Assembly (NCBI GenBank): GCA_047495785.1
Contig: JBLDXI010000013.1
Coordinates: 3,162,001-3,226,000, forward strand
Length of the DNA: 64,000 bases
Source: Lepidodermella squamata
Taxonomy: Eukaryota > Animalia > Gastrotricha
Direction: 5' to 3'
Below, piece by piece: positions 3,053 through 64,000 of this stretch. The notes beneath the pieces were generated by a model that was given only the letters and a program-made list of their open reading frames with translations, did no database searches and was not told the DNA's origin. How positions within the stretch are numbered: position 1 is the stretch's first letter; every line of letters starts with the position of its first letter. The position numbers and the translations under genes are program-made.

Positions 3053-3446
3053 GGTATCGTTTGTTTATAACAAGCACTGAGAAAACCTCTGCGATTTTCT
3101 TGTGTATACCAAATCGATGAATGGCTTTCCCAGCGGTGCATAGGATGTTTGCCTCGAACAAACAGTGAAGACTTCAAATCCCCATTATTCAAACGAGATG
3201 TCTAATTTTAACAGTCATCACAGCATTTGACATTATACCGAGAGACGCGTTTGGTCTATTTTTCTGACCATTAAGAATGGGACCTTCACCGACATCCTCC
3301 TTTTTTTAAATTCTCTCCATGACTTGATCTGGTCAACGCTTACTTCATATTGTCTTGTCTGAACTCGAAGAGATTTTCTGTTGCAAAGAGGATGTCGAGC
3401 GTCGAGCGTGACAAACGTGAACGAACATCCATTAGACATCAGACCA

Positions 3447-3475
3447 AACCGGAAGTCCTGATCAAGGCTTGATCA
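3447..3475. promoter_or_regulatory. ETS-type CCGGAAGT site plus TGATCAAGGCTTGATCA palindrome between divergent genes
   Basis: Motifs lie in the 536-bp spacer between the 4-TM gene (-) and GPCR 2 (+). Confidence 0.3.
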
Positions 3476-3588
3476 CGACTGAAAATTAACACGAAAATAG
3501 CGAGGAGAAAAGCAGACGGCGGAAACCATGGACGCTCAGTTTTTGAGATATTTCGTTCTTTTAATAATTCAGTCAGCTAGTTGAATAT

Positions 3589-6048
3589 ATGAAAATGATT
3601 GCTCAAAACTTTTTGATTTTGCAGCTCGCGGTGACTATAAGCTACGCCCATACTGCCAAACCCTACAAAATGGAGATGCTATTCCTTCTAACAATCACCG
3701 GAGACGAGCCAAAAAATGGAACCGCCTGCCGAGTTGGTGCCCAAATCGCGTTCGATGAAGTCAATGCTCGACAGGACATTCTACCCGACTATCAAATGGA
3801 ACCTCTTTTCATCGACGAAAAGGTCCTTTCATCAGCCGCAGCTCCGTTGGCTGTTCAATTCCGGCGACGACTCGACGAAAACAGAGACAAAGAAGCAGTG
3901 ACCAAGGTCTATCAATCTCCAGTAATGTATGGTCCCTATTTCACGATTGGATGCGCTGCCCTTGCTAGATCTGCCCATTACATCGATATGATCCACATTT
4001 CACTCGGGTGTATCTCGCCGATTTTCACCGCCAATCGACGCTTGTATCCCAATCTATATCGTATAAAGATTACTGGCGAGATGGTAGCTTATCCCGAACT
4101 TCATTTCTTCCGCCGAGTGGCGAAATGGAACCGCTTTGGAATTCTGACGTTCAGCACAAATTTCCTAGACTACCAACTCGCAATTTTCCTCTCTCGAGCC
4201 GCACCATTAGAAAAGTTCGAAGTCTCATTCTTTGACATTGTACCCGATATCGATGATAATGTGATTCAACGTCTGAAGGCCTCTGACTCAAGAGTTGTTG
4301 TTCTCTCAACCGCTACTACGATTCTAGCACTGAAATTTCTGTGTTTCATGCATAAATTCGGCATGACGGGTTCGAGGTATGGATTCGTTCTCCACACTGC
4401 GACATGGGCTGAGCCAACAAGTATCCCTCCTACTTTACCTGGTCTGCCATACTGTACGAAAGCAGTAGTCCTTGAGCAATACAAGTACACATTTTGGATT
4501 GGATTCGCTATGACAGCAACTGGAAATCCTCGAAACGTAACTTCAAGCCTTGGCCCATCTATGGCTGAATTCGAATCCAAGTTCACCAACATGACCCAGG
4601 GTGTTGCTGTGGCCGATAACGATAAACGAATGAACTGCTACGACTCGGCTGTTCACACTTTCATGGCGCTGGATGATGCTGAAAAGAAGTTGGCCAAAGT
4701 AAACAAAACGCTGCGTGACTACAGTAGCCATCCTCAATTGATAATGAATACTGTGAATGACTCCATGGCGAATATCGATTACTATGGTTTCCGAGTCGGT
4801 AGATTCCGCTACTCAAGCAGAGGAGAGTTCGACTCAGATACACAAATCGTGTTTCAATGGACACCAGTCAACCAGCTTCAGGTGCTATATGAATTCGTGG
4901 CGATCAATGAGTCAAACCTGGCGAATTATTCCAACTATCGAATGAAGACTGTTGGCGCACCTGTTTGGTTCTCTGAAGATGGAACCCCACCGAGAGACAG
5001 GGCAATATACAACCTGTTCCTTACTACTGTCCCCGAAGAATTCTTCTGGGTAATTTTTTCATTCGGCTTGATGTTGTCTTTTGTTCAACTCACGGTTCTG
5101 CTGAAAATGCTTGGCCGCCATTTGAGTTTGAACGAAAGGGAAACAAAGCTACCCTACGGTTTCTTGGCATCATCAACCGGATGCATTTTTTTGAACATCA
5201 GCTCAATTTTGTTCGCAGTCAAAGTGACATCGGAAGTTGCTACCTCTTCCGGCCTCTGCGTAAGCCAACGTGTCATGTGTTGCCTAGGCTTAGGTCTTGT
5301 GCATGGGTACTTGGTTTCACGGGTGTTTGCTTTCGTCCGCTACTTGGCGGGGCGGGATCATTCGAGTGTTTACGGTGTTGGGACTAGAAGGAAATCGTCC
5401 AATCTAGGTCCGGGGCCTTCTGTAACGTCTGCAAATAGGCAATCTGTTCAAGTAACACATAAATCATTCAGTTCCGTTACTCACCACTCAGCAAATCAAA
5501 AAGCTGGTAACAACTCTGTTGCTAGCAAAGAGAGCATTCAGTTAAAACCGAATAATGCCAAAGCCCAGGAGAGACCTGTCATATACGGAGTAACTGGAGT
5601 TTTACTCCTGACTATCCTCTACTTGATCATCTGGATGTCGGCAGATACGCCGAAATTCAAATTGCAACAAAGCCCTCCGGTTTATTTCTTTGAAACTGAC
5701 ACAATCTTTGTCGATCAAGTCTTTGCTTGCGAATCGGATAGCGGAAATGACGTTGGGTGGCTCGCTACTATTGTGGCTCTACATGGCGTTCTGCTAGCGA
5801 TCGGAGGGTTGATGTCCTTCAAATTACGACGAATCCACGGAATGATTGCTCTTTTCCCCGATTTCACTATTGTTCGGATGTTGATTGGCCTATTGGCGAC
5901 GTTATTTTTCGCTGGTATTCTCGTCATTATTGTACTACGATCACCTGCTTCTCAAATGGTGGCTATGTCTTGCATTTGCTTGCTGGTTTCACTGTCAGCG
6001 ACTATTGCGGTCTATCTGCCGGTTTTCAGGGTCCTATTGCGCCGCTAA
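3589..6048 (+). CDS. GABA-B-like class C GPCR, intronless, 819 aa
   Basis: Signal peptide; AFDEVNARQDILPDY and YPNLYR flytrap motifs; PPRDR linker; seven hydrophobic helices; no cysteine-rich domain. Confidence 0.9.
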   Translation: MKMIAQNFLILQLAVTISYAHTAKPYKMEMLFLLTITGDEPKNGTACRVGAQIAFDEVNARQDILPDYQMEPLFIDEKVLSSAAAPLAVQFRRRLDENRDKEAVTKVYQSPVMYGPYFTIGCAALARSAHYIDMIHISLGCISPIFTANRRLYPNLYRIKITGEMVAYPELHFFRRVAKWNRFGILTFSTNFLDYQLAIFLSRAAPLEKFEVSFFDIVPDIDDNVIQRLKASDSRVVVLSTATTILALKFLCFMHKFGMTGSRYGFVLHTATWAEPTSIPPTLPGLPYCTKAVVLEQYKYTFWIGFAMTATGNPRNVTSSLGPSMAEFESKFTNMTQGVAVADNDKRMNCYDSAVHTFMALDDAEKKLAKVNKTLRDYSSHPQLIMNTVNDSMANIDYYGFRVGRFRYSSRGEFDSDTQIVFQWTPVNQLQVLYEFVAINESNLANYSNYRMKTVGAPVWFSEDGTPPRDRAIYNLFLTTVPEEFFWVIFSFGLMLSFVQLTVLLKMLGRHLSLNERETKLPYGFLASSTGCIFLNISSILFAVKVTSEVATSSGLCVSQRVMCCLGLGLVHGYLVSRVFAFVRYLAGRDHSSVYGVGTRRKSSNLGPGPSVTSANRQSVQVTHKSFSSVTHHSANQKAGNNSVASKESIQLKPNNAKAQERPVIYGVTGVLLLTILYLIIWMSADTPKFKLQQSPPVYFFETDTIFVDQVFACESDSGNDVGWLATIVALHGVLLAIGGLMSFKLRRIHGMIALFPDFTIVRMLIGLLATLFFAGILVIIVLRSPASQMVAMSCICLLVSLSATIAVYLPVFRVLLRR

Positions 6049-6486
6049 TCTCAGGTCAGAATCAGACGTGACAAACGAGCGTGATGAGTGGGTTTTTGCT
6101 TTGTCTGAGGCCTACGCAAGTTAAATTATTACGGAAATAAACATGTGTTTAAATTTAGATGGCTTAAAAGCAGGAAATTCATCAAACTATTTCTCGACAG
6201 AAAAACATACTGTCAACATGGGCGTGCTCCTATAATTTTCCAGAATGAAAATAGCTGTCGAATCAAGAAGGAACAAGTGTGACTAAAGGTTAATATTGTC
6301 CGGTTTGATAAGCTATCTACGATACCAGATCGTTTGGGTCGATGAAAAAGTATGTGAGCTAAAAATAGAGCCGGTATCATTGCCAACCCCGCTATCAAGC
6401 ACAAAACCACAGCTCTAAACTATACATACGTGCACATCTCATTATTAGAGAAATTCTAAAGCTGAATTAACGTATATTTAAAAAAA

Positions 6487-8079
6487 ATGTTGCTGTATGT
6501 TGGAGCAGCTTTAGGAGCTGTTTTATTTCTCGCATCCTATCGCTTTATCCTCGATAAATTGCGTTACAGATTACCGCCCGGTCCAACGCCACTTCCTCTA
6601 TTGGGAAACGTGCATTTGTTTCCGGATGCTCAAAACAAGAAGGGCCCGAAAATTTGGCGATGGATGTGGCAGCAAGCCGAGAAATACGGCCCTATCTACA
6701 CAATGTATCTGGGGCAGTATAGGGCAGTAGTTTTGACAGATCTAAAACTGATCCAAGAAACTCTTGTCGGGCAAGGCGAAACGTTTCAAGGAAGAAATTT
6801 TGAATTCACGGCCGGAATGACTGGATCAAGAGAGGGCATTCTATTCGCGAGCAGTAAGAAGTGGCGTAAGCATCGCAGATTTGGTCTAAAGGCAATGAGA
6901 GATTTTGGCATGGGCAAGGACGTCATGGGGCCGAAGATACTCGAAGAAGCCGAGAATCTGCTTGCTGAACTCGAGTCCAGAGTTGGGGAGCCATTTGATC
7001 CTCGCATATTAATTGCAAATTCGGTTTCAAATGTGATTTGCTCATTGGTATTTGGTAAACGGTAAGGGTGTTGGGCCTTCTGAAACCCCGTTGAATGAAC
7101 GTCTAATTTTCAGATTCGATTACGGTGATAAGAAGTTCATCCATTTGTTGAACTTGGTGAGGCCTTTGGTTTCCGAGTTTCTTGGGGATCGAGACAAATT
7201 CATGCTACTTCCTTTTCTTGATTATATTTACTTACCCAAAGAGGTTTTTTTACTTGTTCATGAGTTCAATAATATACTTATTATAGTAACTTTGATTTCC
7301 AGACCCGATTGCATTTGGAACTAAGAGGAGAAATCGAAAGAATGATGCGAGTGGCTATTACTGAGAATCAAAAGAACTTCGATCCTTCCAGCATCAGAGA
7401 TTTCCCCGATCTTTTCATTGACATGGAGAAACGCCTCCCTGCAGAAGAGCTAATCGCGATGACAGACTTCAGCTTCATCATGGCTGACTTCTTCCTGGCT
7501 GGGACTGAGACTACATCAACAGCTCTCAACTGGACGCTTCTATACTTGGCAACGCATCAAGACGTGCAGCGGGCGTGTCACAATGAAATCGACGCAGTTA
7601 TCGACACAGACCGGCTCCCTACCTTGAAAGACCGCAGCCAGCTTGTTTACGTTAACGCTGTCATGTGCGAGTTGTTGCGTCACATGCCTGTCACGCCTCT
7701 TGGGGTTTTCCACGCAAATTTAGATTGTCATGCGAAAATTGCTGGTTACGATATTCCGCCTTACACAACGGTAGCTTACGTTATCGGCGCAATGCATAAC
7801 GATCCGACGTATTGGGGAGATCCGGATAATTTCAGGCCAGAACGATGGATTGATCAAGATGGGAAGTTGCTGAATCACTCGCCTTACTTCATGCCCTTTG
7901 GCATCGGACCTCGCATTTGCCTTGGCGAGTTATTAGCGAAAGCAGAGTTTTTTGTCTTCCTAACCTGTATATTACGGAAGTTCAAACTTGACTTAAAATC
8001 ACCGGTGAATCTAAATGAGTATACATCAGGTGCAGTCAGCATGGCACCTGCATTTCAATTGATTTTGTCCAAACGCTGA
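6487..8079 (+). CDS. Cytochrome P450, CYP2 clan, 3 exons
   Basis: PPGPTPLPLLGN, WRKHRRF, AGTETTS, ELLR, FRPERW, FGIGPRICLG; introns ~7062-7113 and ~7243-7302. Confidence 0.95.
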
Positions 8080-33517: not shown

Positions 33518-35288
33518 CTATTTTCCTGTGAAGCGGCGAAGATCAAAGCGGTAATTTGAAACTGCCGACCGTAACCGGTTAGGATTGGCAAGAATCGCTC
33601 GGGCCGCCGTGTTGATGCCCGTCCACAGATCAACACCAGCCGGTTCAATTTCATTCGATTCGACGACGAAGCCGAATTGAGGATCGTCGGAGCTAGGTCG
33701 CAATTCCAGGGTATAGGCGTACTTTATTCCCTCACTCTTCGCCCAGTCGTCCGAACCCCCAGCAGCCGGGTACAGCAATTCAACGGTATTACCCACCCGC
33801 CAACTTTGATTCGCACGATTCGTGATGGCGGTCATGCCAAGTCGAGCGACACGCATCATTTCATCGAAATCGTTCGGCTTCGTTGCGCCCGAGTAGCCCC
33901 AGGGTACCAGCCAGTAGTTGCCGTAGGAGTGGACGGCGAAATAGGCGACAATGTCACGGCGACGAGATCGGACGAAATCGGCGATGGCTTTGGTCTCCGG
34001 CTCGCTGAACGGTGTAGGGCCTTGGTAGACCTCGGCGCATGGGTTGGTCGATGCGCCGTTCGTTCCCCATTGGAAGGCGAAATTCCGGTTAGGATCGGCA
34101 CCGTAGCAAGCTGGTTTGTGAGTACGGCTACGAGTCTTACGCCAATAACGTTGCTAAAAATATAGAAAATCCGTCTCAAAATAAAATAGAAATAAATTTT
34201 AATTAATTAACAAAAAATAGAATTTTTTCAGACTATTCTTTTAAAACTCGAAATTTACAGCAGGTGTGCGGCTATATTCGTAACCATCCGGGTTCGCAAT
34301 CGGTAGAATGTAAAGGTCAAGGCGGCTCAGTAGGTCAAAAACAGTGCCATCACTTCGGTAATTTCTCAGCAGCTGATTTTTCAAGATTAAAAATTAAAAA
34401 TTGGTAAAATTTTATTGGGAACTAAATTACTTTGTTCATGAGCCAAACTGCAGCGGCACCGGATACCCATTCTCGGGCGTGAATATTTGCGTCCATGAAA
34501 ATGGCCTTCTTATTTTGACCGCGGAACCCGATCTGATATAAAAATTTAGTAAGGCCTGTTTCGGGCAATTAAGTAACTTACCTTCATCAATTTCATTTTC
34601 CTGCCTTCGAATGAGTAGCCAATATCAATGCAAGATGCGACACTAGTATGACGCCGGCACATGTCCTCCATCCAGGTACAAATCTGGGTCACATAAAAAA
34701 GCAATAAAAAAACTATTAAAGCGTGAAAAATTCGAAAATTACCGCGCCGTAAGATGCGAAAGCTCCGACTACTTGAGCGCCCTCTGATGGTCGAGTTGCA
34801 TTCGACGTTAAACTAGCTCGTTTTGCAATTGGATGTTCAGCATTATGAAACGGGTTTGACGCATGTTCTCGCCTCACTCGTCTGTAAGACAAAAAATTAA
34901 TTGAAATTTTGTTGTTTAAATCGTATGCTTACTCGGCAATGTTAAGCGGCGTCAAGGTCACGTTCAGATTAGTTCGAGTAATGTTTCGTTCGAATAAATG
35001 AGTAACATCACCCGGGACGCGAATAACCACCGGCGAGAGGCGACCGGGCATAGGTTCGTTCCAAAAGTCGAGCTGGAAAAATACGAAAAATTAAGGTGAA
35101 AAATCAGAAAAATATTCAAAATTCACATTCAAATGTTCGCGAAGTTGTTGAATAAGTTCGATATCAGTTGCTCGAGTCGGCGTGAGTTTGAACACTTTAT
35201 CGTTGACATACGGCGCACCTACGTCGTCGAGGCTGACAGTAGAAATCACGGAAATGCCGGAAAATAATACTGCGAAAAAGAAATGCAT
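33518..35288 (-). CDS. M14A procarboxypeptidase, B-type specificity residue, multi-exon
   Basis: Signal peptide, propeptide (LDFW), IHAREW, NPDGYEYS, WRKTRS, DPNRNF, HSY, GGSDDW, YTLELRP. Confidence 0.9.
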
Positions 35289-46780: not shown

Positions 46781-47946
46781 GCATATCGAGATTTTATTTG
46801 TATAACCATCCGCCTCTCGGCGCTCTAGGCGCGATAACTTATGCCACGTAGATTAGGTTAAAGTAGTCGATAAAATATTCATGTGGAAGTTTTTAGAAAA
46901 ATCTGAAGAATTTACAAAACGGAGTTTATAAAACATATTAAAAACGAGCGTGTGTAGTTAATTGGTGTCAAATGTTATCCAGTTCCTGGGGTCGATTTGG
47001 AGGTTGTAAGCGGGCTTCGGTTGATTTCGAATATGCCACGCTGGGCAGCGTTTTTCAATTTCATGTGCTGTATCGGTAGACGGTGTCAGGGTCGATATGT
47101 GGTCTAGATACTTGGCAGTTACGAGTGAGCTAGCGAGACAGCGTTCGCCGTATCTCTTTAGGGCTTCATCAAACTTGAGGTCGATGCCGGGGACTCCGGC
47201 AAATGCTATGACGTCGATAGGGTGAGTTTCGTGAGGAAGGCTCAAAAGGGCTCTCAGGCAGTAGGCTTGCAGGTCCACCAGGCGGCTCAAGGATGAAGGG
47301 CTCAGGCAGGACCAGGCAGGCGCACCGTAAAGTAGGATCGGCTCCAAAAGAGTCTGGTAAAACAAAACACAAACCCTTTTGGGTAACAACTTAGTTTTTA
47401 AAGTCCCATACAGAGACCCGACGCGTTGTCGGATCTTTGACGCGATTACGTCGATGTGATGCGACCAGGACAATTGTGGGGTCAGATGCAGGCCCAGGTA
47501 CCGCACCTGGTTGACTTGAGGGATGGCTTGGCCATACAGCTCGAGATGGATTGAGGGAGGTGTATTTCCGTAGTGGCCGAAGATGATAGCCTCGCATTTT
47601 TGCGGGTTCAGCATTAGCCGCCATCGTTTACACCACCTTTCGGTGGCACTGAGCCTTTTTTGCAGGCGCTTGACACAGACATTGTAGTTGTCGCCATATG
47701 CCCAGTTGATGGCGTCGTCGGCGTAAGTGCCTTTGGCGACACGACGTGCTCCGTCATCGGGGTTACAGCTTTTGGGCTGCATGTCGTTGGCATAAAAAAT
47801 GAAAAGAAGCGGTGACAAGGGCGAGCCTTGCGGCACGCCGCAATAGATGTTCCTCGTTGCAGATAGCTCGCTTCCCACTCGGACTTGAAATGATCGGCCC
47901 CGCAGGAAGTCAGAGACCCACCTTACTATTGGCACCGGTACCCCGA
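46781..47946 (-). mobile_element. 5'-truncated LINE (RT C-terminal half + 3' UTR)
   Basis: ORF 46958-47935 with GVPQGSPLSPLLF, YADD, RYLG; 17-bp TSD CTGAAGACGCTCATTTG at 46764-46780 and 47947-47963. Confidence 0.93.
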
Positions 47947-49863
47947 CTGAAGACGCTCATTTGTGAGGAGAGGGTAAAAATGAGGAATCAATCAAACGTT
48001 TGACAGAAAATGCCTATATATTGGAGCCGTGACTACGATTGCCCCATTCATAGATACCCTAATAGTACTCTTTGTTAGCATTATAAAACAATGCCCTCGT
48101 TATTATAATAACAATTATAGTCAAGTTCGTCATCGTTTCATGTATTATTATTGTTCCATTTTAATGCAACGCCTGCATAAACTCATCGTCCGGTTCCAGG
48201 TATAATGGTAAGCTTTTCATCGTATTCGTGCTATTCCGGCAAACAAAATTACAAAAGTTACAATAATCTGGTCAAAACCGAAAAATTCCGAAATTTTGAA
48301 TTCAGCCGTAATACCCGGCCACGTGGTCAAAAAACCTCATTCATAATGCCATTTACGCTGGAGAAATTACTAATAATCGTATATTGCACGCAGAATGAAT
48401 GAAAATCAGGCCATTGCGGCCAATATTAATTGTAAACTTAAATTAATTATTTTTGCCTGAAATAATAATGATTCTAGCGTAAGTATATCAGCTAGATAAT
48501 CGGCATATTGCTGAATCTGGTCAAAAGGACACCTTTTACGAGAGAGTTGTGATTAGATTCTCATAATTGCGGTAGTCTTGCGGTAGTCGAGAGGTACTTT
48601 CTCGTAGAAATCCCGAAAAACTACCGGAATATTCGTATTATTCCCGCCTGCGATAGACCGTTCGACATAAAACCACGCGCAAAGTTTCCGCCAAAATGTC
48701 GTTTCGGCCATTTTTCGCGCCATTTATTTTTTATTCTTTATTTACATAAAATTTCATGCGATGATCATCGGCTTCCCTTCTTCCCTACTTCAGCTCATTT
48801 CGAGATAATTTTTTTGCCTTCCTACTCATGACTAAACAAATAACCCAGTAGAAAAGGATAGCCAATTTTTCGTGTCCAAAATTCTCCAAAGGCGCTGTCA
48901 TGAACACGAAAGCGCGAAAAATGTTCGAGGAATGCCCATTCAATGTCGCCATTGTTTAAATTATCTTCATTGGTTAAGCACGACAGGTGGGGCAATGACG
49001 TCGAAAGTTGGAACCAGCGTGGACTGAACTATGAACTCGGCGTGATGATCTCAAAGTCCAGTCTCAAGTGACCTGTGATAAGGACAAGCCGCCTTTTTTC
49101 GTGACCTGACATATGTTATACCGATGGCTCCACTTTCGAGGGCGATGGTTATACTCACGTGGTTTGTCATCGATTCAAACGATAAAGGGAAATGGTAATG
49201 CCATTAGTAATGTCTCGATAAACAACAGTATTAGTCACCAGACATCACGAGTCATTTTTTCAGACTTATCCAGAAAAATTCCCCTTCACTTTCCCTCATT
49301 CAAAAATTCGGAGCTGATAAGACTTGGCGGTAGGTGATATCGTAAAAAAAATGTCCTGCGGTGAGGGTTTGTCCCCTTATCGTTTTTTGGCGCAGCGCCA
49401 AAATCACCCGTAAAAAACGCACTACACAATGGAAAAAGACATATTTTATCACATGAGTTCGTTTTTTCGTGCATGCAAATGAATGAAATATACTTATTGC
49501 GGGAATAATCTCGCCTGCTTCCGCTTCGTTCATTGAGCAATCGCTTTGTTCTGCTATAACGCGTTTCCGCCACAAGAGTATAATTTTTGACGCGTTTATA
49601 GTATCCAGTTACAACTCCAGAGAGATAAGAACGATAGTCCTAAAATAGCGTAAAATCGTAGCTTGAGAAAATATATCTCGACAAGAAACGAGATTAACGT
49701 TTTTTTGCAACGTCACCCCACAGAGTCAGGCGAGGACATTTCTCAAGCCATACACCTGCGCTAATAAATGGAATACTAGTTACAACTTGTGATAACAGAA
49801 CCGCCCTATAAAACGCCAAAATAGTGAAACAGCCCAGCCACACCTTCCATTCATTACTGAAAA

Positions 49864-52482
49864 ATGGCTATCACATTCAGAGAGCTCGGGCTACAAACAA
49901 TGGCTTTCGTCCTCATGCTAATCACCCTACCTTTGATTCTGGGCGAGGCGATACCTGGCCATGATCAATCGACTGGAAAACGGCTTTACAACGGCGACAA
50001 AATTTTACGAATTTTTCCAGCGACGAAAGCTCATATCAGTTATTTGAAAGACGTGCTGAGTGAGCAGGACGTTATCGATAGTTCTGGCTCGGTATTTTTC
50101 GAAATACTAACCGAAATCAGAGGGCCTGGTCACCCTGTCGATATGTACGTTCGATTCGATAAGCTACAAGGCATCGGCGGCTTCCTCGAGACGACGAAAA
50201 TGACGTACAAAGTCATAGTTGACGACGTTCAAAGACTGATCGATCAAGTGGAAACTGGCGACAAATCGAGAAAATTCGCGAAACGAGACCTACCTGTTGG
50301 GGAAGAGCCGAAAGTTGTCGGGAAATTTGTGTCTTATGACAATTTGAAACGTTGGCTGGATGCGCAATGCTCGGCTTATCCGGGCTTGACGTCATGCGGA
50401 TCGCTTGGTTCGACTTATGAAGGCCGGGATTTGCGGTACATTCGCATTGGTCACGCGAAATCACCGACTAATAACGCGGACGAGAAGAGGTCGGTGTTCA
50501 TCGAAGGTGGAGTGCATGCTAGAGAATGGCTTGGCCCGGCAACAATTGTTTGGGTTATTAATAAGGTCAGTATTTATCTTGAAAAATTCCACAGTGTTTA
50601 ATTCCTGTTTATTTCAGATGCTCATAAGCTATCAAACTGATTCTCGAGTAAAGAAACTCCTCGACTCTTTCGAATTTTACTTTGTCCCCTCATTGAATCC
50701 TGATGGTTATGAATACTCAAGATCTAAAGAAAGTGAGTGGAATAATTTATTTAATCAATTTTTACTAATTAATTGATTAATTGATTAAGGACTTTGGCGT
50801 AAAACCCGATCGAATACTACTTCACCTATTTGTTTTGGCGCGGATGGAAATCGGAATTTTGATGTTCGATGGGGTTCGACTGGGAGCGAGTCTAATCCAT
50901 GCTCGAACGTGTACCATGGCGCGACTGCCTTCTCAGAACCGGAGACAAAAGCAATGTCGGATTTTATTATGAGAGATCAACAAAAATGGCTGGCTTTCTT
51001 CTCGATGCACTCCTATTCTCAGTTCTGGCTCGTACCTTACGGCTTCGAACCAGGTGCTAGGCCGAAGGATTTCGAAGAACTGGTAAGTGGCATAATATTT
51101 AAAAAATAGAAAAAAATACTAAAATTCCAATAAATTCAAAATTTAAATTTGAAAATTTGAAAAATTTGAATATTTCAAAATTTTTTAAATATAATGATTA
51201 ATTTATAATCTCATTTATCGTAAAAAATGTAGAAATACCTTTTGAAATTTAAAATTCCAAAAACAATTTTAAAAATTAAATTTTTTTTTAAATCTCAATT
51301 TGTATTCTTAAATATTCTGAATTTTAGATGCGAGTGGCCAACATCGGTGGTAGTGCGTTAATGGCCGAGCATGCTGGTACCCGCCAGTGGGAAATCGGCA
51401 ACACCGTCAACCTAACCTACGCCTGTTCCGGCTCATCAGACGACTGGGCGAAAGCTGTCGTTGGCATGAAATATTCTTACACCTTGGAACTCGCGCCCGG
51501 CTCGAATTCCCTAACTGGTTTCGTCGTAGGCGAGTCCGAAATCGAACCCAGTGGCCGCGAGGTTTTCGCCGGAATTACAGCAGCTGTTGAGGCTATGATA
51601 ATCCCTACCCAAGACAACGAGGCCGATGCTACTGCCTTGATAATGCCAGGCGATATCAACGACTTGTTCGGCGGAAATAGCGCGATTGAGGACGAAGAGT
51701 TCACATTTTCTATCCACGAACTTCAAATTATTCTAAACAAAGTCGCCATGGACGTTCGGGCGTTGAACGACCGCGTCGACGGCGTTGAATCAACGTGCAA
51801 AAGCGACTCGCAACGCCTGAAATCGCGCGCTGATAAACTCGAAAAAGATTTGCCAAGAATTGAGGCGAAATTGCAGTCACTTGACCTAAATAGCGACACT
51901 TTGTGGAAAGCGCTTGCCCAGACAAATTCGAGGCAAATGGCTATTCAAAAGCAGCTGCATGAAGCCCATCTAATCGTTGCTGTCACGCCTCGTTTTAAGC
52001 CCCACGCTGTCTCGAAGGAAAGCCTCCTCGGGGAGACTGTCAAGCTAGGTGAGGTCGATGATACAATAATTGAGGCGATACGAAAATTGGATGCCGAAGA
52101 GGTCACTGAGATCAAACATAGCAAGGCCAAGCCTCGAACTGGAAGCTTGGGTAACTCATCAGAGGAACAAATTCGCGAATATTTGGTCGAAGCAAGGCGA
52201 TTGCGGGCCCAACATCGCCAGGTCCTACTTAGCGCGAGAACTAGGTCAATTACCGAAAAAGCCGGGTTTTGGTTCGAAGCGCAGTTCACAACAGACGAAA
52301 AAGCTGCGAAACGGCTGTTGGAAGCTCACGCCGCCAGGTTGAAAACGCAATACGGCGATTCGTTGAAATATTCGATCAAAAACATGAAATTAACGACTAA
52401 TCATGGCGATTTTTACTACGACACTGTCGTGAGAAAAGTGTTACCTGTAAAAACTACGCAGGCCGCTTTGAACGGTGATTAA
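49864..52482 (+). CDS. M14A procarboxypeptidase (B-type) with a ~290-aa C-terminal extension resembling LINE ORF1p (754 aa, 4 exons)
   Basis: Exons 49864-50565, 50618-50732, 50790-51082, 51328-52482 in frame; HAREW, DGNRNF, HSY, GSSDDW, YTLEL; no stop after the peptidase; coiled coil then an ORF1-like tail. Confidence 0.85.
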
Positions 52483-52706
52483 ATAATTTTTTGTTATACG
52501 CACCACTGATTTTTCGCATCTCTTGTTCGTTATAGTCTGATTTTTGTTAAAACAAAATTGTGTTGATATTGTATGCATTGTCTTTTTTCGTCTAGTTATT
52601 CTGCTTGCAAAGCGAGTTTTTTTTGTAAAATTTGAAACACCTCAAGTAAAAGAGCACAACAGGTAAAAATTTTCTCTCCGTTTTATTCTACCAGCTTTCA
52701 GGACTT

Positions 52707-56265: not shown

Positions 56266-57826
56266 ATGATTAAGGTATCATTGCTAATTTTAGCCCTGCA
56301 TTTGGCCATCGCAGGTGCTGAGAAAATTTCATACCGTGGTGACGCTGTTTACCGGTTATTCCCTAACGCTGAATACCAGCGGCAATTTCTGAGCGAACTT
56401 GCTCATGTCACTGATTTCGATTTTTGGAGCCATGTAACACGAGATGGCCCTGTCGATATTCGTGTTCCAAGAGAGTCAATGCCTAAAATTCACTCGATTC
56501 TAAATGCGACGCAAATTCCTCATGTTATCGCAGTTCCTGATGTTCAACAGTAATCTTTCGATATTCAGTGCAAAATTTTCCAAAAAATGAACTAAAATTT
56601 CCAGGCTAATTGACCACGAGGAGAAACAATCGGCTGCGGTTCGAAACGCTAGAAGTGCGGATAAATCGAATCGAGCGAAAAATATTGTTGGTCAGTATGC
56701 CAGTTATTCAGACATCACCAACTGGGTCCATCAAATGTGTGTCGAACATTCGGCCCTTGCAACCTGCGGGACTTACGGCAAATCTTACGAGGGCCGTGAT
56801 TTGATTTATATGCGCTTGGGCTTGGCGCCGGTCGGTACGGCAAAAAATGCGATTTTCCTCGAAACTGGAATGCATGCTCGGGAGTGGATTCACGCTGCGA
56901 CTGTAGTGTACATCGTCGACCAGGTTAGGATACATTTATTATTTTTATAGGCATTTCAATTAAAATTTGAATATTAAATGATTAAAAATATAATTAAATT
57001 CAGTAAAAAAATTATGAAGTTATTTATTTTGCCAACAGTTGCTAACAAAGTACGCAACTGACCCAACTGCTAAGCGGATGTTGGATAACTGGAACTTCTA
57101 CGTGACATTCGTCGCCAACCCTGACGGCTACGAATATTCGCGAAACACTGATCGCTTATGGCGGAAAACTCGTAGCAAACAGGCGAAAAATTGCTACGGC
57201 GTTGATCCAAACCGCAATTTTGACGCATATTGGGCTAGTAAGTCCTGCTGATAATTGATAGAGCCAAAAATCTTGATAATTCTTTTTTTCAGCCGTCGGC
57301 AGCAGCAATGACCCGTGCTCTGACACTTTCCATGGCCTATCAGTGTTTTCAGAGCCTGAAACCAAGGCGATTTCAGATTTTGCCCTCTCAATCAAAAGCC
57401 AACTTGCCGCTTATTTTGCTGTTCATTCTTTCTCGCAATACTGGCTAATTCCTTATGGCTACAAGAACAACGCTAAGCCATCAGATTACACTGAATTGGT
57501 AAGTTATCATTTCATTCCGAATGGAATTATTTACTCACATTTTTAATATTCAGAAAAGGGTCGCTGATATTGGTGGCAAAGCTCTTATGGCTGTTAATAA
57601 TAAAAAGTGGGTCATTGGCAATAGCGCCGACGTTTTGTACGCATGTGCCGGTGCCAGCGACGACTGGGCTAAATTGAAAGCTGGTGCCAAATATGTTTAC
57701 ACCCTTGAACTACGCCCGGCTTCCGGAACAGTGAGCGGTTTCATTATACCCGATTCCGACATCATACCGAGCGGGCGAGAAATCTACGCTGGTTTAACTG
57801 CTGCTATTGACGCTATGGCGCCATGA
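56266..57826 (+). CDS. M14A procarboxypeptidase, B-type, multi-exon
   Basis: GMHAREW, NPDGYEYS, DPNRNF, HSF, GASDDW, YTLELRP. Confidence 0.92.
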
Positions 57827-57911
57827 TAAACTGCATTAAAAAATTGTCAATTTTAATTCGAGGAATTATGAAATAAAAATAAATTATATGGAAGTATGAA
57901 TCCGAGGAATT

Positions 57912-58218
57912 CTTGGGTCGTCAACTCATCCGCGGTCAACTCTTCCAGCGACAACTTATCCGAAATCCGAAATAAAAAAATATTTAATTAATTATTTTCA
58001 GTGACATCTCATCCGTTCCGGCTGAGTTGTTGCGCATGAGTCGCCACTAAAATTTAAAAATTAATTATGTTTTAATCATTCTAATTCTCGGATAACTCGG
58101 GCCGGACGGGGTGTCACCGGATGAATTGTCACCGAAAATAATCAATTAAATATTTATTCCATTTCGCATTTTTTAACTGTCGCTGGTCGAGTTGTCGCGG
58201 GCGAGTTGATATTTCACC
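57912..58218. mobile_element. Degenerate foldback element
   Basis: TCAACTC/GACAAC subrepeats mirrored by GAGTTG; flanks GAGGAATT / GAGGAACT (8-bp TSD, 1 mismatch). Confidence 0.65.
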
Positions 58219-58481
58219 GAGGAACTTTATGAAATAAACGCGATAAGCTTTCCGTGCTCTTTACGCGATGATTAATGAAGGGTCATTATTTTTCTGGTTA
58301 TTATCAACTTCTTCCCTTGAGCGACTAAAGTTCCGTTTGCTTATTGATAAAAACGAATTTTGAACCGGCTATCTCTATCCGGTGCTAGATAATTCGCGCC
58401 GCGGTTGTTTTTGCCCTTCTTACACGTTATATAAGGCGCGGAAACCACCGGACTTGGGACTAGTTATTTTCTTCTTTAAAA

Positions 58482-60008
58482 ATGAAACTCGCCATCCTCT
58501 CAGCGTGTGTTGTAGTCTTATTAGCACTCAGTGCTGATGCCCGTAAAGCCTACAATGGCCACAAGGTTTTCCAGGTGATCCCGACAAATGAGTTCCACCT
58601 GTTCCTGTTGGCCCAGAAGATGCCGTATGAATCCCACAAGGGCGCACTGGACTTTTTCACGCGCCCAACCCGCCCGCGTCAACCAGTTGACATCCGAGTC
58701 GCCCCAGAAATGGCCACCGAATTCGAGAAATTCCTCCAAACGAACAACATGCAATACTGGGTTCGAGTGAGGGACCTTCAAGAGTGAGTGAAAAATTGGA
58801 AAATTACATAATTTTAAAATTTTTGAATTTTTTAGGCGGATCGAGGCAGTTGAGGCTATCAACAAGCACCTTCGAGCCCAGCGAACGGACGACAGCATTG
58901 TTGGAACTTTCGCCTCGCATGCTGATACCAATGCCTGGCTCCAGGCTCAATGCCAAGCCTACCCCAACATCACCACCTGTGGTACCATGGGAATGTCGTA
59001 CCAAAACCGTGACATGCAATACATCAAGCTGGGCAAAAAATCGTCGCTGCCCGTTGCTCCCCGCAAAGCATTCTACATCTGGTCCGGCATGCACGCTCGG
59101 TTTGTGAAAAAAATCGGTTTTCTTAAAAAATTTCAAAAATTTCAAAATTCGAAAAATTAATAAATCTCAAAAAAATAATACAGATAAATAAAACTTCATA
59201 ATTCGAAAAATATAAATTTTGAAATTCTTTTCAATTTTTTTAATAATTAGTGAATGGTTGGGTCCGTCGACTATCATTTGGATCATCAACCAAATGTTGA
59301 CCCAATACGGCACCGATCAGTCCATCACCAATTTGATCAATACCTACGACATTTTCTTCGAACCCATCGTCAACCCGGACGGCTATGAATACTCGCGAAG
59401 CGACGACCGCATGTGGCGCAAGACCCGCGCCCTTACCCCCGACACGAACTGCGTCGGCGTCGACGGCAACCGCAACTTCGACTACAAGTGGACCGGCGGC
59501 GGCAACCCGTGCGATGAAGACTACGGCAGCACGGCGCCGATGACGCAGAAAGAGCTGCAGAACATCGACCGCTTCATGCGTCTTCAGAACAAGACGCAAC
59601 ACGGTGTTATGTTCATCTCAGTCCACACTTATTCTTCGATTTGGCTGCTTCCCTACGGCTATGCCAAGCACGCCTACCCTGCTGACTACAACGAAGAGGT
59701 ATTTTTCGGAAATTTTCGAATATTTAAATTATCATTATAATTTTCATCAGCTCCGTGTTGCCAATATTGGAACTCAGGCCTTGGAGGCAGTTCATAACAC
59801 CCAGTGGCAGGTCGGAAATATCGTCGACCTTCTCTACGTCGCAACTGGCAGCAGCGCTGATTACATGAAGGGCCATGGCTTCGTCAAGTACTCCTATGGT
59901 ATGGAGCTCCGTGGTACTGATTTCGTTGTGCCAGAGTCGGAAATCGTGCCATCTGGTCAAGAGGTTCTCGCAGGCTTCGTCGCTGCTTTCCAAGCAGTCC
60001 AGCCTTGA
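58482..60008 (+). CDS. M14A procarboxypeptidase with Ala at specificity position 255
   Basis: TATATAA at ~58428; GMHAR|EW, DGNRNF, HTY, GSSADY, YGMELRG. Confidence 0.92.
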
Positions 60009-60905
60009 AAAGATGAAAAGATAACAGACATCATTGAACTGAAATCAACCTAATAAATAGATTAGGATGAAAAAATAAAAGAATAATTTAGCCAAAGTTA
60101 TTTCTTTATTATTTTCAAAATCTATTCGGATGAGGCTCCCAAACTCAGGGCTCCATTATTTCCTTATTCATCCTCATTTAAAGTTACCTTGAGCCTTTGG
60201 AGGGGCATCTTGCTCAAGACAGGGACTTGTCAAGCTTGGAAATGATCACCTTGGGAACCTACCAACCAGCTTTGAGGTCGATTCCCGCACATGGACCGCT
60301 CCTCACGGGAGTTGGCGCATGCACCCTTCATGGGGCGCCCAGGACTGAAACGGCTCTTGTTAGCCTTACGTTTTTAGAACTTGCAACAATTATGCAGACT
60401 GTTCGGGTTCGCTCGTGCAAACCAAGCTTTTCGGCTATTAAACGGCATTAAATTCCACCCTTGTGCATGTCGACAATTCAAGCTCTAATATGATGAGTGA
60501 ATTAAAGTTAGGGTTTATTAAGGCCGGGAAGGTGAAGCTATTATTTACCTTTTCATGTCAGAACAAACTTCTACGTTATTATCATAATATACTTTTCCAC
60601 GCATTGTTATTCTACTCATTTTATATTTTTTTCTCGGCTTCACATTTCAAGGTACTCAGCAGAGACTGATTCATTCTAAAATGACCTTAATTTCCTCTTC
60701 TTCAAACTTTTCCTCTGCCTGAGCCCTATGCCTGATTAGGACCGGGAACCGGCATGATAGCGGCGAAAAATGACCTGAAACTCTCGTTAATTAGTTTTTA
60801 TTATTCTCAGGAGATGTTATCAATCCTCAGATAAAGAATAGAGGCCTTTACAGCCCTGTTAGAGCTATTCCTTAACAGTTTCCTTGTTTTTGTAGACAAA
60901 ATAAC

Positions 60906-62595
60906 ATGAAGCTATTAATTGTAGTTGCCCTGCTGGCAGTTGCCGTCAGTGCTAAGAAGACCTACTACGGCCACAGTATCTACCGAGTGACCCCTGAAAC
61001 CCCTGAGCAGTTGCATGCCCTGCGCCAACTGGTGCCATACCGCGCCAATAAAGGCCATCTCGACTTCCACCACCAACCCGAGGCAATCGCCCGCCCGGTT
61101 GACATTCGAGTCACCCCGGCTGGTCAGGAAGAATTCGTCGCGTTCCTACGCCGACTCCGCTTCAGCTACACACTGCACATTGCCGATGTTCAGGAACACA
61201 TCGATCGCGTCGAGGCGTTGAATGCCCTGCAGAAGCCGAAGCAACTCGGCGATATTGTTGGAACATTCGCGTCTCATGCTGATATCAACGCCTGGTTGCA
61301 GCAGCAATGCCAGCAATACCCGAATATTACGAAGTGCGGCTCGTGGGGCAGCAGCTACGAAAACCGAGACATGCAGTACATCAAGATCGGCAAGGTCCCA
61401 CCAGGTCCAGTTCATCCTCGCAAGGCGATTTACATTGTCTCCGGAATGCATGCTCGGTAAATAAATTTCAAAAATTGTATAAGTTTCAAATTAGTATTCA
61501 AAAATTTCAAAAATATTAAAAAATTATTAAAAAAACCAAAAATTTTAAAAATTTATTCAAAATTCAAATTTAATTGAATTAAAAATGTTGAATTTGCTCA
61601 CTTTTTTTAAATTTGCTAAAAAATTTGAAAATTTTCAAAAATCCTAAATTTCAAGTTTATTTTTTTTAATTTTTCTTTCAGTGAATTCAGTCCAAAAATT
61701 AAAACAAATTCAGAACAATTATTCAAAAATTAAAAAAAAATTAAAAAATTTCATTCAAAATTTTTTTAAATTTGCTAAAAATTTTCAAAATTTTCAAAAA
61801 TCCTAAATTTTAAGATTGATTTTGTAATGTTTCTTTCAGTGAATGGCTTGGTCCGGCCACCATGGTTTGGATCATGAACAACTGGCTGACCAATTACGGA
61901 ACTGACAAGAATATTACCAACCTTCTGAACACCTATGACATCTACGTCGAGCCTGTTGTCAACCCAGACGGCTACGAATACTCGCGAAGCGACGACCGTT
62001 ACTGGCGCAAAACCCGCTCGCCGACCAGCGACGACAGCTGCCCGGGTGTCGATGGCAACCGCAATTTCGACTTCAAATGGACCGGCGGCGGTGATCCGTG
62101 TGATGAAGATTACTCCGGCACGGGCCCTCTGACGGAACACAACACCCAAAACATCGATGCTTTCATGAAGAAGCAGAACCAGACGCAGCATGGTCTGGCG
62201 TTCTTCTCAATTCACACCTATTCCTCAGTGTGGCTCCTGCCCTATGGTTACGCTCGCCGTGCTTACCCTCCAGACTACAACGAACTCGTAATTTTTTAGA
62301 AAAATTTTCGAATTTTCTTCCATTGAAATTGTTTCAGCTGCGTGTTGGAAACATCGGCGCTAATGCTTTGATGGCTACTCACAATACGCAGTGGCAAGTT
62401 GGAAATATTGTCGACCTGTTGTACGTCGCCGCTGGTAACAGCGCTGATTACTACAAGGGCCACAACTACGTCAAGTACTCGTACGCTATGGAGCTTCGTG
62501 GTACCGATTTCGTCGTCCCTCAATCCGATATTGTGCCGTCTGGTCAGGAAGTTGGCAATGGTCTCATGGCAGCTATCCAGGCCATGAAGGCATAA
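60906..62595 (+). CDS. M14A procarboxypeptidase with Ala255, close paralog of the 58482 gene
   Basis: GMHAR|EW, DGNRNF, HTY, GNSADY, YAMELRG. Confidence 0.92.
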
Positions 62596-62926
62596 CAATT
62601 TGTGATTGCAAAAAAATCAATCAATCGTCCGAAACTTTGACCTAATTATAATTTCATTGTGATTCAAAATAATGACCTATAAATAATATGGAAATAAATG
62701 AGTTGAAGTTTTTGACCTACTTAAGGACAAGCACGCTGATAAGGTGACCTGAGTCTTATTTCTGAAATCTCACGTGAGTCTAGACACCCAATGGGTGCCA
62801 GATGTATACTCTGTAGAGATAAGCTGGTCTAATGCCCCAGACTAATAACCCTAACGAAGTCGAGTGAACGCGACCATAATTGGAATTTGGAAATTTTTTT
62901 CCGAGTTTTCTCGTAATGCAAGAATA

Positions 62927-64000
62927 ATGAAGCGAAATACTTTCTTTACGCTAATTTTGTTCGGTTTTTTCCAATTTTCATCCACTAATGAGGCTCACGT
63001 CATAACTGTCAGCGATTCTCACTCATCCGAGCCATTATTAAAGGGTGCCGTTCGATATGATGGAGATCAAGTGTTCAGAATTTACCCGAAAAGTCAGATA
63101 GACATTGAGTTCTTGAACACCGTTGTCCGAGATCATGAACAAGACCAGTCGCTATCATTCTGGAAACAGTCATCGACTATCGGGCAGCCAATCGATATTC
63201 ACGTGAAAGTAGGCAACGTCCCTCGAAATTTTTTGGATTTTTCTTAATACAATTTTTATTCAGGCAACAGCGGTTCAGTGGTTCAAAGTTCAAGTATTGC
63301 ACGCGTACCAAATTCCTTACACAATTCGAATAACGGATCTGCAACGGCACATCGAGCAGACCAATGCGTTCAACGAACAACGGCGGCGAAAATTGGCGGC
63401 TCTTCAGGGCGGAAACAGCAGCGTTGTCGGGCATTTTGTCAGCTACGACGATATTAGCGCTTGGCTCAGCTCGATTTGCACGACCTATCCGAATCTAGCG
63501 CAATGCGGGATCAGCGGAGTTTCGTATGAAAATCGAAAAATTCGCTATATTCGAGTAATTAATGCATTAATTTTCTATTTTAAAATCTCAATTTTTCAAA
63601 AATTAGTTTATTTCTAGTTTTATCAAGATGATTTTGTATAGGATTTTTTAAATTTCAAAATTAATTGAAATTAATTTTTGAAATTTGTAGCTTGGAACCA
63701 CGCCGGCAGCTAACGTTACAAAGCAAAATATTTTGATTTTCGGCGGTATCCACGCTCGCGAATGGCTGTCTCCAGCCACCCTAGTCCACGTTATCAATCA
63801 ATTTGTTCAAAAGTACAGCTCAGATGACGTAGCTAAAAAAATGCTCGACGATTACTACTGGTACATATTGCCCGTCGTGAACCCGGACGGCTACGAATAC
63901 ACGCGGTCTACGGATAGAATGTGGCGAAAAACTCGATCAATTAACACTGGATCGATGTGCGTTGGTGTCGATGGCAATCGAAATTTCGACTTTCATTGGG
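62927..64000 (+). CDS. M14A procarboxypeptidase, 3' end outside window
   Basis: Signal peptide MKRNTFF, YDGDQVFRI propeptide, GIHAREW, NPDGYEY, DGNRNF. Confidence 0.9.

Follow-up and report, generated by a model that had tools for sequence, protein, structure and literature searches.

A gastrotrich procarboxypeptidase gene with a conserved tail whose C-terminal domain was probably captured from a LINE ORF1

Few host genes are known to stem from the first open reading frame (ORF1) of a long interspersed nuclear element (LINE), among them L1TD1, the EKA effectors and four fusion isoforms reported from vertebrates in 2025, all of them intracellular. L1TD1 and EKA are stand-alone ORF1-derived genes and not enzyme fusions. 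Here we describe a gene at positions 49864-52482 (+ strand) of a 64,000-nucleotide stretch of the genome of the gastrotrich Lepidodermella squamata (contig JBLDXI010000013.1, positions 3,162,001 to 3,226,000; hereafter the window), in which an M14A procarboxypeptidase runs in frame, within its last exon, into a tail of 289 amino acids beyond the usual end of the enzyme. We consider it probable that this is a conserved, expressed gene for a secreted enzyme and that at least the C-terminal domain of its tail was captured long ago from a LINE ORF1.

The vertebrate fusions between the ORF1 protein (ORF1p) and host proteins are Lyosin (L1 ORF1p-MYL4), L1-RFX5, NUP42-L1 and USP4-L1 (Kitao et al, 2025, PMC12129022). 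They share with the carboxypeptidase gene a LINE ORF1-derived stretch that forms, in frame, the first or the last coding exon of the host gene, purifying selection and the loss of the second open reading frame (ORF2), and they retain the coiled coil and the ORF1p domains to varying degrees (PMC12129022). The vertebrate fusions, however, arise by alternative splicing, belong to intracellular proteins and stem from L1 proper, which their sequence still reveals (PMC12129022), whereas the carboxypeptidase tail prolongs a last exon that is constitutive, belongs to a putatively secreted zinc peptidase in an invertebrate-type genome with short introns, and would come from a LINE whose ORF1p is not recognised by Pfam and of which only the C-terminal domain is detectable. 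L1TD1 of mammals derives from L1 ORF1p and is not a host-gene fusion (PMC12129022), and the EKA family of avirulence effectors in powdery mildew is traced to LINE ORF1 (PMC4641428). Both are host genes of LINE ORF1 descent, a property that the carboxypeptidase tail would share.

L1 ORF1p itself is a type II ORF1p, composed of a coiled coil, an RNA recognition motif (RRM) and a C-terminal domain (PMC5940361). The tail resembles it in having a long coiled coil with two RhxxhE motifs, a parallel trimer (predicted in the case of the tail), a segment of RRM size and, after this, a small C-terminal alpha/beta domain. The two differ in what comes first, since L1 ORF1p starts with its coiled-coil region and in the carboxypeptidase the enzyme precedes the coiled coil.

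The fused gene, its transcripts and its ortholog

The gene has four exons, and the frame 51328-52482 (384 aa) is the last of them. The model was built from a reading of the genomic DNA together with transcript contigs; the joined product would be about 754 aa long, and every search reported here was made with single exons of the gene. All features lie on the + strand:

49864..50565, +: exon 1, with the start codon, a hydrophobic signal-peptide-like N-terminus, the M14 propeptide, the start of the catalytic domain and the HAREW zinc-ligand motif
50618..50732, +: exon 2, with GT..AG joints 50565/50618 and 50732/50790 in a contig of run X1
50790..51082, +: exon 3, with the substrate-binding motifs WRKTR and GNRNF and the zinc-ligand motif MHSY (Pfam Peptidase_M14, 3.3e-12)
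51328..51612, +: exon 4, first 95 aa, the C-terminal M14 catalytic part with the catalytic Glu in the LELAP motif
51613..51711, +: acidic linker, tail residues 1-33, with nine Asp/Glu and no Lys/Arg; predicted local distance difference test (pLDDT) below 50
51712..51963, +: coiled coil, tail residues 34-117, a single confident AlphaFold2 helix and predicted parallel trimer
51772..51789, +: first RhxxhE motif, RVDGVE (RVDMVE in the ortholog), as defined in PMC5940361
51826..51843, +: second RhxxhE motif, RADKLE (RIDRVE in the ortholog), same definition
51964..52260, +: middle segment, tail residues 118-216, at the position of the RRM-like region of ORF1p; similarity non-significant, pLDDT mostly low
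52261..52449, +: ORF1p-type C-terminal domain, tail residues 217-279, modelled as one helix and a four-strand sheet
52480..52482, +: stop codon TAA, read from the sequence
52483..52666, +: 3′ untranslated region, its extent given by the end of an X1 contig

The acidic linker, the heptad stretch, the HEAHLIV..KPR segment and the GFWFE..FYYD segment that a preliminary description of the window had pointed out are all present in the 51328-52482 translation.

Transcript evidence for the tail came from sequencing run X1, which behaves as RNA: its contigs contain two GT..AG joints at exon borders, the introns are empty and cover runs from 49862 to 52666, and run X2 (DNA) evenly covers introns and flanks. 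Past 52666 the depth of X1 falls to about 1-3, while that of X2 stays at about 70. One X1 contig (51375-51965) spans the peptidase part and enters the coiled coil, overlapping contigs extend to 52666, coverage is continuous over 51375-52666 and no joint was found inside exon 4 in the X1 contigs. The interval 51590-51720, for which the preliminary description had proposed a check with reads, is crossed without a joint by contigs that reach about 52666. The tail is expressed. It is also under purifying selection: in runs X1 and X2 together, none of the 19 exon 4 polymorphisms listed changes an amino acid, and 18 fall within the tail, where synonymous sites make up about 22% of all sites. Two points count on the other side, namely that ten further differences across the whole compared stretch lie outside the 19 listed, and that the transcript contigs are compatible with a minor isoform ending earlier.

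The tail is present as a single copy in the 121-Mb assembly, with no near-identical copies, as expected from the preliminary description. Among 1.84 billion representative proteins, phmmer found one true relative of the tail, P0001 (E 1.3e-56); the only other match, a HEAT-repeat protein, was judged spurious. P0001 is an ortholog encoded on two metagenome contigs, and it carries the same fusion with the order propeptide, M14 domain and tail preserved. Identity between the orthologs is 69% in the peptidase part and 40% in the tail, which contains conserved blocks. Three word-index searches returned nothing new, although low-complexity words may have swamped query A3, and a scan of JGI metagenomes was empty. 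The old domestication that the preliminary description had read from the intact but diverged frame fits the shared fusion at 40% tail identity and the synonymous polymorphisms.

Two observations concern the surroundings of the ortholog. Just upstream of it lies an M14A paralog (L002:218-769, +) whose extension opens with a similar linker (IP..N..D); its last 30 or so residues are hydrophobic and resemble a membrane anchor or glycosylphosphatidylinositol signal. This branch of M14A may thus have experimented with C-terminal extensions of different kinds. Genes with DM9 domains and a galaxin-repeat gene follow the ortholog (L002:6622-11511), and this gene content points to an animal source of the contig.

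Could the tail be a decayed transposon remnant, transcribed by neutral read-through but without function, or a part that is removed when the enzyme matures? Cleavage might occur in the linker, which is acidic and poorly modelled, and the ortholog is less similar in the tail than in the enzyme, but the listed polymorphisms are all synonymous and the 289-residue frame has stayed open, with its blocks and motifs conserved, although 60% of the tail residues differ between the two species. We regard both readings as quite improbable. The transcripts, the synonymous polymorphisms, the single copy and the fusion in the ortholog together make recent insertion, neutral read-through and an annotation artefact all unlikely.

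The enzyme part has the composition of an M14A procarboxypeptidase. Exon 1 matches Propep_M14 (PF02244; aa 48-128, 4.7e-12) and Peptidase_M14 (2.8e-17), and the match of exon 4 to Peptidase_M14 is confined to aa 2-81 (profile positions 208-285 of 286, 4e-09); exons 1, 3 and 4 together account for positions 2-285 of the 286 of PF00246. The active residues of M14A enzymes are, in bovine carboxypeptidase A numbering, HxxE, Arg127, Asn144-Arg145, His196, Tyr248 and Glu270. The exon translations contain HAREW, WRKTR, GNRNF, MHSY, LTYACSG and LELAP, assigned by eye against the known pattern, and these are the motifs expected of an active M14A enzyme. In exon 1 the residues after the first or second Met form a hydrophobic stretch, and the ortholog has one as well; judged by eye, it is signal-peptide-like and suggests that the enzyme is of the secreted type. 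The fused gene thus shares its signal-peptide-like N-terminus, activation propeptide, catalytic domain and catalytic motifs with ordinary pancreatic-type M14A procarboxypeptidases, which end at the last helix, whereas here 289 residues are added. As to the exon borders, a GT donor at 50566 ends exon 1, and this border is a spliced joint in the X1 contigs. The exon 3 donor is the GT at 51083 and the exon 4 acceptor the AG at 51326-51327; the depth of X1 is zero across 51108-51241 and no listed contig bridges the exon 3/4 junction, through which the ortholog reads without an intron.

Searching the window with the carboxypeptidase exons (tblastn) located five further M14A copies, four on the + strand within 56332-64000 and one on the - strand:

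56332-57817, +: M14A paralog, first of the tandem downstream of the fused gene
58834-59999, +: M14A paralog, same tandem
60948-62586, +: M14A paralog, same tandem
63044-64000, +: M14A paralog, same tandem
33590-34674, -: M14A paralog, opposite strand

The complete paralogs of the cluster all stop at the normal position. Their last exons (four complete copies) end after 85, 85, 89 and 112 aa, compared with 384 aa in the fused gene, which agrees with the preliminary description in reading on past the end of its paralogs in the same exon. The tail was found on one of at least six M14A paralogs.

Kinship of the C-terminal domain of the tail with the ORF1p of a resident LINE

When a profile of the two tail orthologs was run against the genome itself, there was one notable non-self match, a 308-aa open reading frame on another contig (E 0.017, tail positions 208-280); a second non-self match lay in the coiled-coil region (E 0.51). 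The 308-aa frame is part of a family scattered over the genome, for which at least 20 matches of 27-72% identity were found, several interrupted by stops. In three full-length copies it is followed immediately by an ORF2 of 1235-1238 aa with Exo_endo_phos and RVT_1 domains, and it is therefore the ORF1 of an endonuclease-type LINE (for example, ORF1 at L020:2103-3215 and ORF2 at 3143-6847). The ORF1ps of this family are recognised by no Pfam family. Their layout comprises a short coiled coil with two RhxxhE motifs, a globular part and a low-complexity end rich in Q, N and P. Compared with the PDB, the ORF2 matched L1 ORF2p and R2 almost equally, which does not place the LINE in a clade.

Full-length copies at L020:2103-6847 (+) and L021:5871-10000 (-), on contigs C7 and C54 of G000, have open ORF2s of 1235 aa, and their ORF1 copies (read from L011 and L012) are one residue apart, which suggests that the family has been mobile recently. 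A 655-aa open frame at L050:232-2196 (-) (G000:C64:581039-581620), in which an ORF1p-like N-terminal part is joined to an apparent reverse-transcriptase palm region, is probably a deleted LINE copy.

Profile comparison showed that tail residues 217-279 are homologous to the C-terminal domain of this resident LINE ORF1p. BLASTP of the tail against the 308-aa frame gave an E value of 1e-5 over 71 residues. Aligned with hhalign, the tail pair reached a probability of 42% (E 2.7e-4) against seven ORF1ps and of 87% (E 3.7e-6) against nine, after two divergent subfamilies were added; a second run of the comparison with the nine gave 93% (E 3.5e-7, score 52.3 over 61 columns). By comparison, 100 column shuffles of the tail alignment scored 14.0±2.4 with a maximum of 21.3, and the reversed tail alignment scored 22.0. 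A hidden Markov model (HMM) of the ORF1p C-terminal domain, run against 2248 open reading frames, placed the two tail orthologs next in rank below the true ORF1 copies (E 0.0018 and 0.047). No other part of the tail is as well conserved as this region, in which 35 of the 63 residues are identical in the ortholog. Beyond the domain, the order of parts is collinear in the two proteins and both have two RhxxhE motifs in the coiled coil that precedes it, spaced by 18 residues in both tail orthologs and by 21 in the LINE ORF1ps. Greedy extension aligned the tail and the LINE ORF1p collinearly over 197 columns, a figure that is descriptive only, and the language-model neighbours of the two overlap (Baculo_FP_2nd, Transposase_22 and three other clusters), which provides leads only; a literature search linking baculovirus FP25K and ORF1 yielded nothing useful. 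The resident ORF1p differs from the tail in having a coiled coil of about 40 aa (84 aa in the tail), a Q/N/P-rich low-complexity end, many copies and an ORF2 that follows, whereas the tail lacks the low-complexity end and the ORF2 and exists as one copy.

A number of results weigh against a derivation from ORF1p. Of the 289 residues of the tail only 63 are significantly similar, and a coiled coil is a generic feature; the tail family consists of two known members only. With a plain HMM of the LINE ORF1p the tails reach no more than 11-15 bits, and when the genome was searched in the reverse direction, with a profile of the ORF1p, the tail was missing from the list. The middle segment scored 12.5 in hhalign against the RRM-like part of ORF1p, compared with 10.6±2.3 for shuffles, which is noise level, and its reading as an RRM is not supported. 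Unlike L1 ORF1p, the tail matched none of the Pfam families Transposase_22, Tnp_22_dsRBD and Tnp_22_trimer, even at E up to 10. Profile searches of the PDB retrieved no L1 ORF1p chain, only noise and generic coiled coils; for the C-terminal domain, Foldseek against the PDB found no solved L1 ORF1p, only weak frataxin-like rows; and the VIA wide fold search, whose list was filled by long helices and coiled coils, showed no L1 ORF1p match. With two family members, the AlphaFold2 model is shallow (mean pLDDT 58.6). No ORF1p family of Pfam was found in the ortholog tail, Foldseek against BFVD gave nothing significant, and an Atlas fold search with the C-terminal domain returned only two unnamed clusters of about 100 aa (TM 0.52-0.53). 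PF02994 was not found in this genome by a search that found nothing in its control genomes either.

The preliminary description had read the tail as a module derived from ORF1p of the L1/CR1/L2 type. Its expectation of a match to Transposase_22 or L1 ORF1p failed in Pfam, in the PDB sequence search and in Foldseek, and the RRM is unsupported; what stands is the C-terminal domain, linked not through L1 but through the resident LINE. Of the three contrary outcomes named beforehand (no match to the RRM or C-terminal domain of ORF1p, transcripts spliced or ended early, many near-identical copies of the tail), none was seen.

If the likeness were due to chance or convergence, the tail would be a coiled-coil extension peculiar to the lineage, either derived from the host or arisen de novo. 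The lack of any Pfam, PDB or Foldseek link to an ORF1p, the dissimilar middle segment and the low HMM bit scores are what one would then expect to see, but the hhalign score lies about 16 standard deviations above the column shuffles and rises as the ORF1p profile becomes more diverse, the LINE ORF1 is the sole non-self relative of the tail found in 121 Mb, and the matched domain is placed alike in the two proteins, being terminal and preceded by a coiled coil with RhxxhE motifs. We therefore consider a chance likeness unlikely and homology with the LINE ORF1p the better account.

Homology alone has no direction, and 63 residues are too few for a tree, so the LINE family might in principle have taken its ORF1 C-terminal domain from the carboxypeptidase gene or its ancestor. 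This we consider very improbable, as the domain is present in all the diverged ORF1 subfamilies, down to 21-23% identity, whereas the tail is a single copy on one of at least six M14A paralogs. Judged from this distribution, capture from LINE to host is the most likely direction.

The near-identical full-length copies elsewhere in the genome, with their open ORF2s, raise the question of whether the tail belongs to an active or recent insertion of a family that may still be mobile. To the contrary, the tail is single copy, its identity to any ORF1p is only about 16-27% even in the matched domain, and the fusion is shared with a distant species. No similarity to reverse transcriptase was found downstream of the 51328-52482 frame, in agreement with the earlier statement that no ORF2 follows. 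A recent insertion is accordingly extremely improbable. Being single copy and without a downstream reverse transcriptase, the tail would be a descendant of the LINE family and not a member of the element, as expected of a domesticated derivative. A reverse-transcriptase fragment does lie about 2 kb upstream of the carboxypeptidase start (46961-47935, -; RVT_1 4.2e-14). It has only about 25% identity to ORF2 of the resident LINE family and is therefore attributed to another element, not to the missing ORF2 of the tail.

Predicted trimer and consequences of the capture

AlphaFold2 modelled two parts of the tail with confidence, the long helix of residues 34-117 and a helix with four strands at residues 227-279; the C-terminal domain, with a pLDDT of about 85, is the most confident part of the model. 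A single-sequence prediction of exon 4 proved unusable (mean pLDDT 39). The RhxxhE motif, which the L1 ORF1ps of mammals conserve, is a hallmark of parallel trimers (PMC5940361). When three copies of tail residues 28-125 were modelled together, the score was 0.66 compared with 0.02 for the best of three controls, in a test that 21 of 30 solved homo-pairs and none of 23 single chains had passed and that, as a point of caution, was calibrated on two-copy cases and on microbes. The contacts were parallel and in register, with at least 95% agreement between runs and a partner pLDDT of at least 85. The model thus supports a parallel trimer, and with it the suggestion of the preliminary description that the tail serves in trimerisation.

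From these observations a course of events can be proposed. At least the C-terminal domain of a LINE ORF1 of the kind still resident in the genome would have been captured onto the last exon of the carboxypeptidase gene, and its reverse-transcriptase gene would since have been lost. The trimeric tail would then hold three carboxypeptidase domains at one end of a rod, whose length is estimated at about 12 nm from the 84 helical residues. Three ORF1p-derived domains at the far end could act as a binding module, by descent for polyanions or nucleic acid, or could cap the rod. The enzyme would thereby be multivalent or tethered instead of freely diffusing.

A bolder version is that the trimeric extracellular carboxypeptidase keeps a working retrotransposon domain that binds single-stranded nucleic acid or polyanions, and that this is the first domestication of a LINE ORF1p into the secretory pathway. 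We think this rather unlikely. Were it true, the retained domain would tether the enzyme to extracellular RNA or DNA, sulfated glycans or matrix, or would recognise retrotransposon particles, and the host would have found a new use for a transposon RNA chaperone outside the cell.

The capture of the C-terminal domain that we favour would itself extend the domestication of ORF1p to a non-vertebrate animal, to a LINE ORF1p invisible to Pfam and to a putatively secreted hydrolase with the tail in its constitutive last exon, and would be a rare instance of a host enzyme adopting a transposon protein. Captures of this kind are detectable only when orphan tails are compared with the transposons of the same genome. 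The carboxypeptidase tail would serve as a natural experiment that tests the capabilities of a coiled coil and C-terminal domain of ORF1p away from the retrotransposon.

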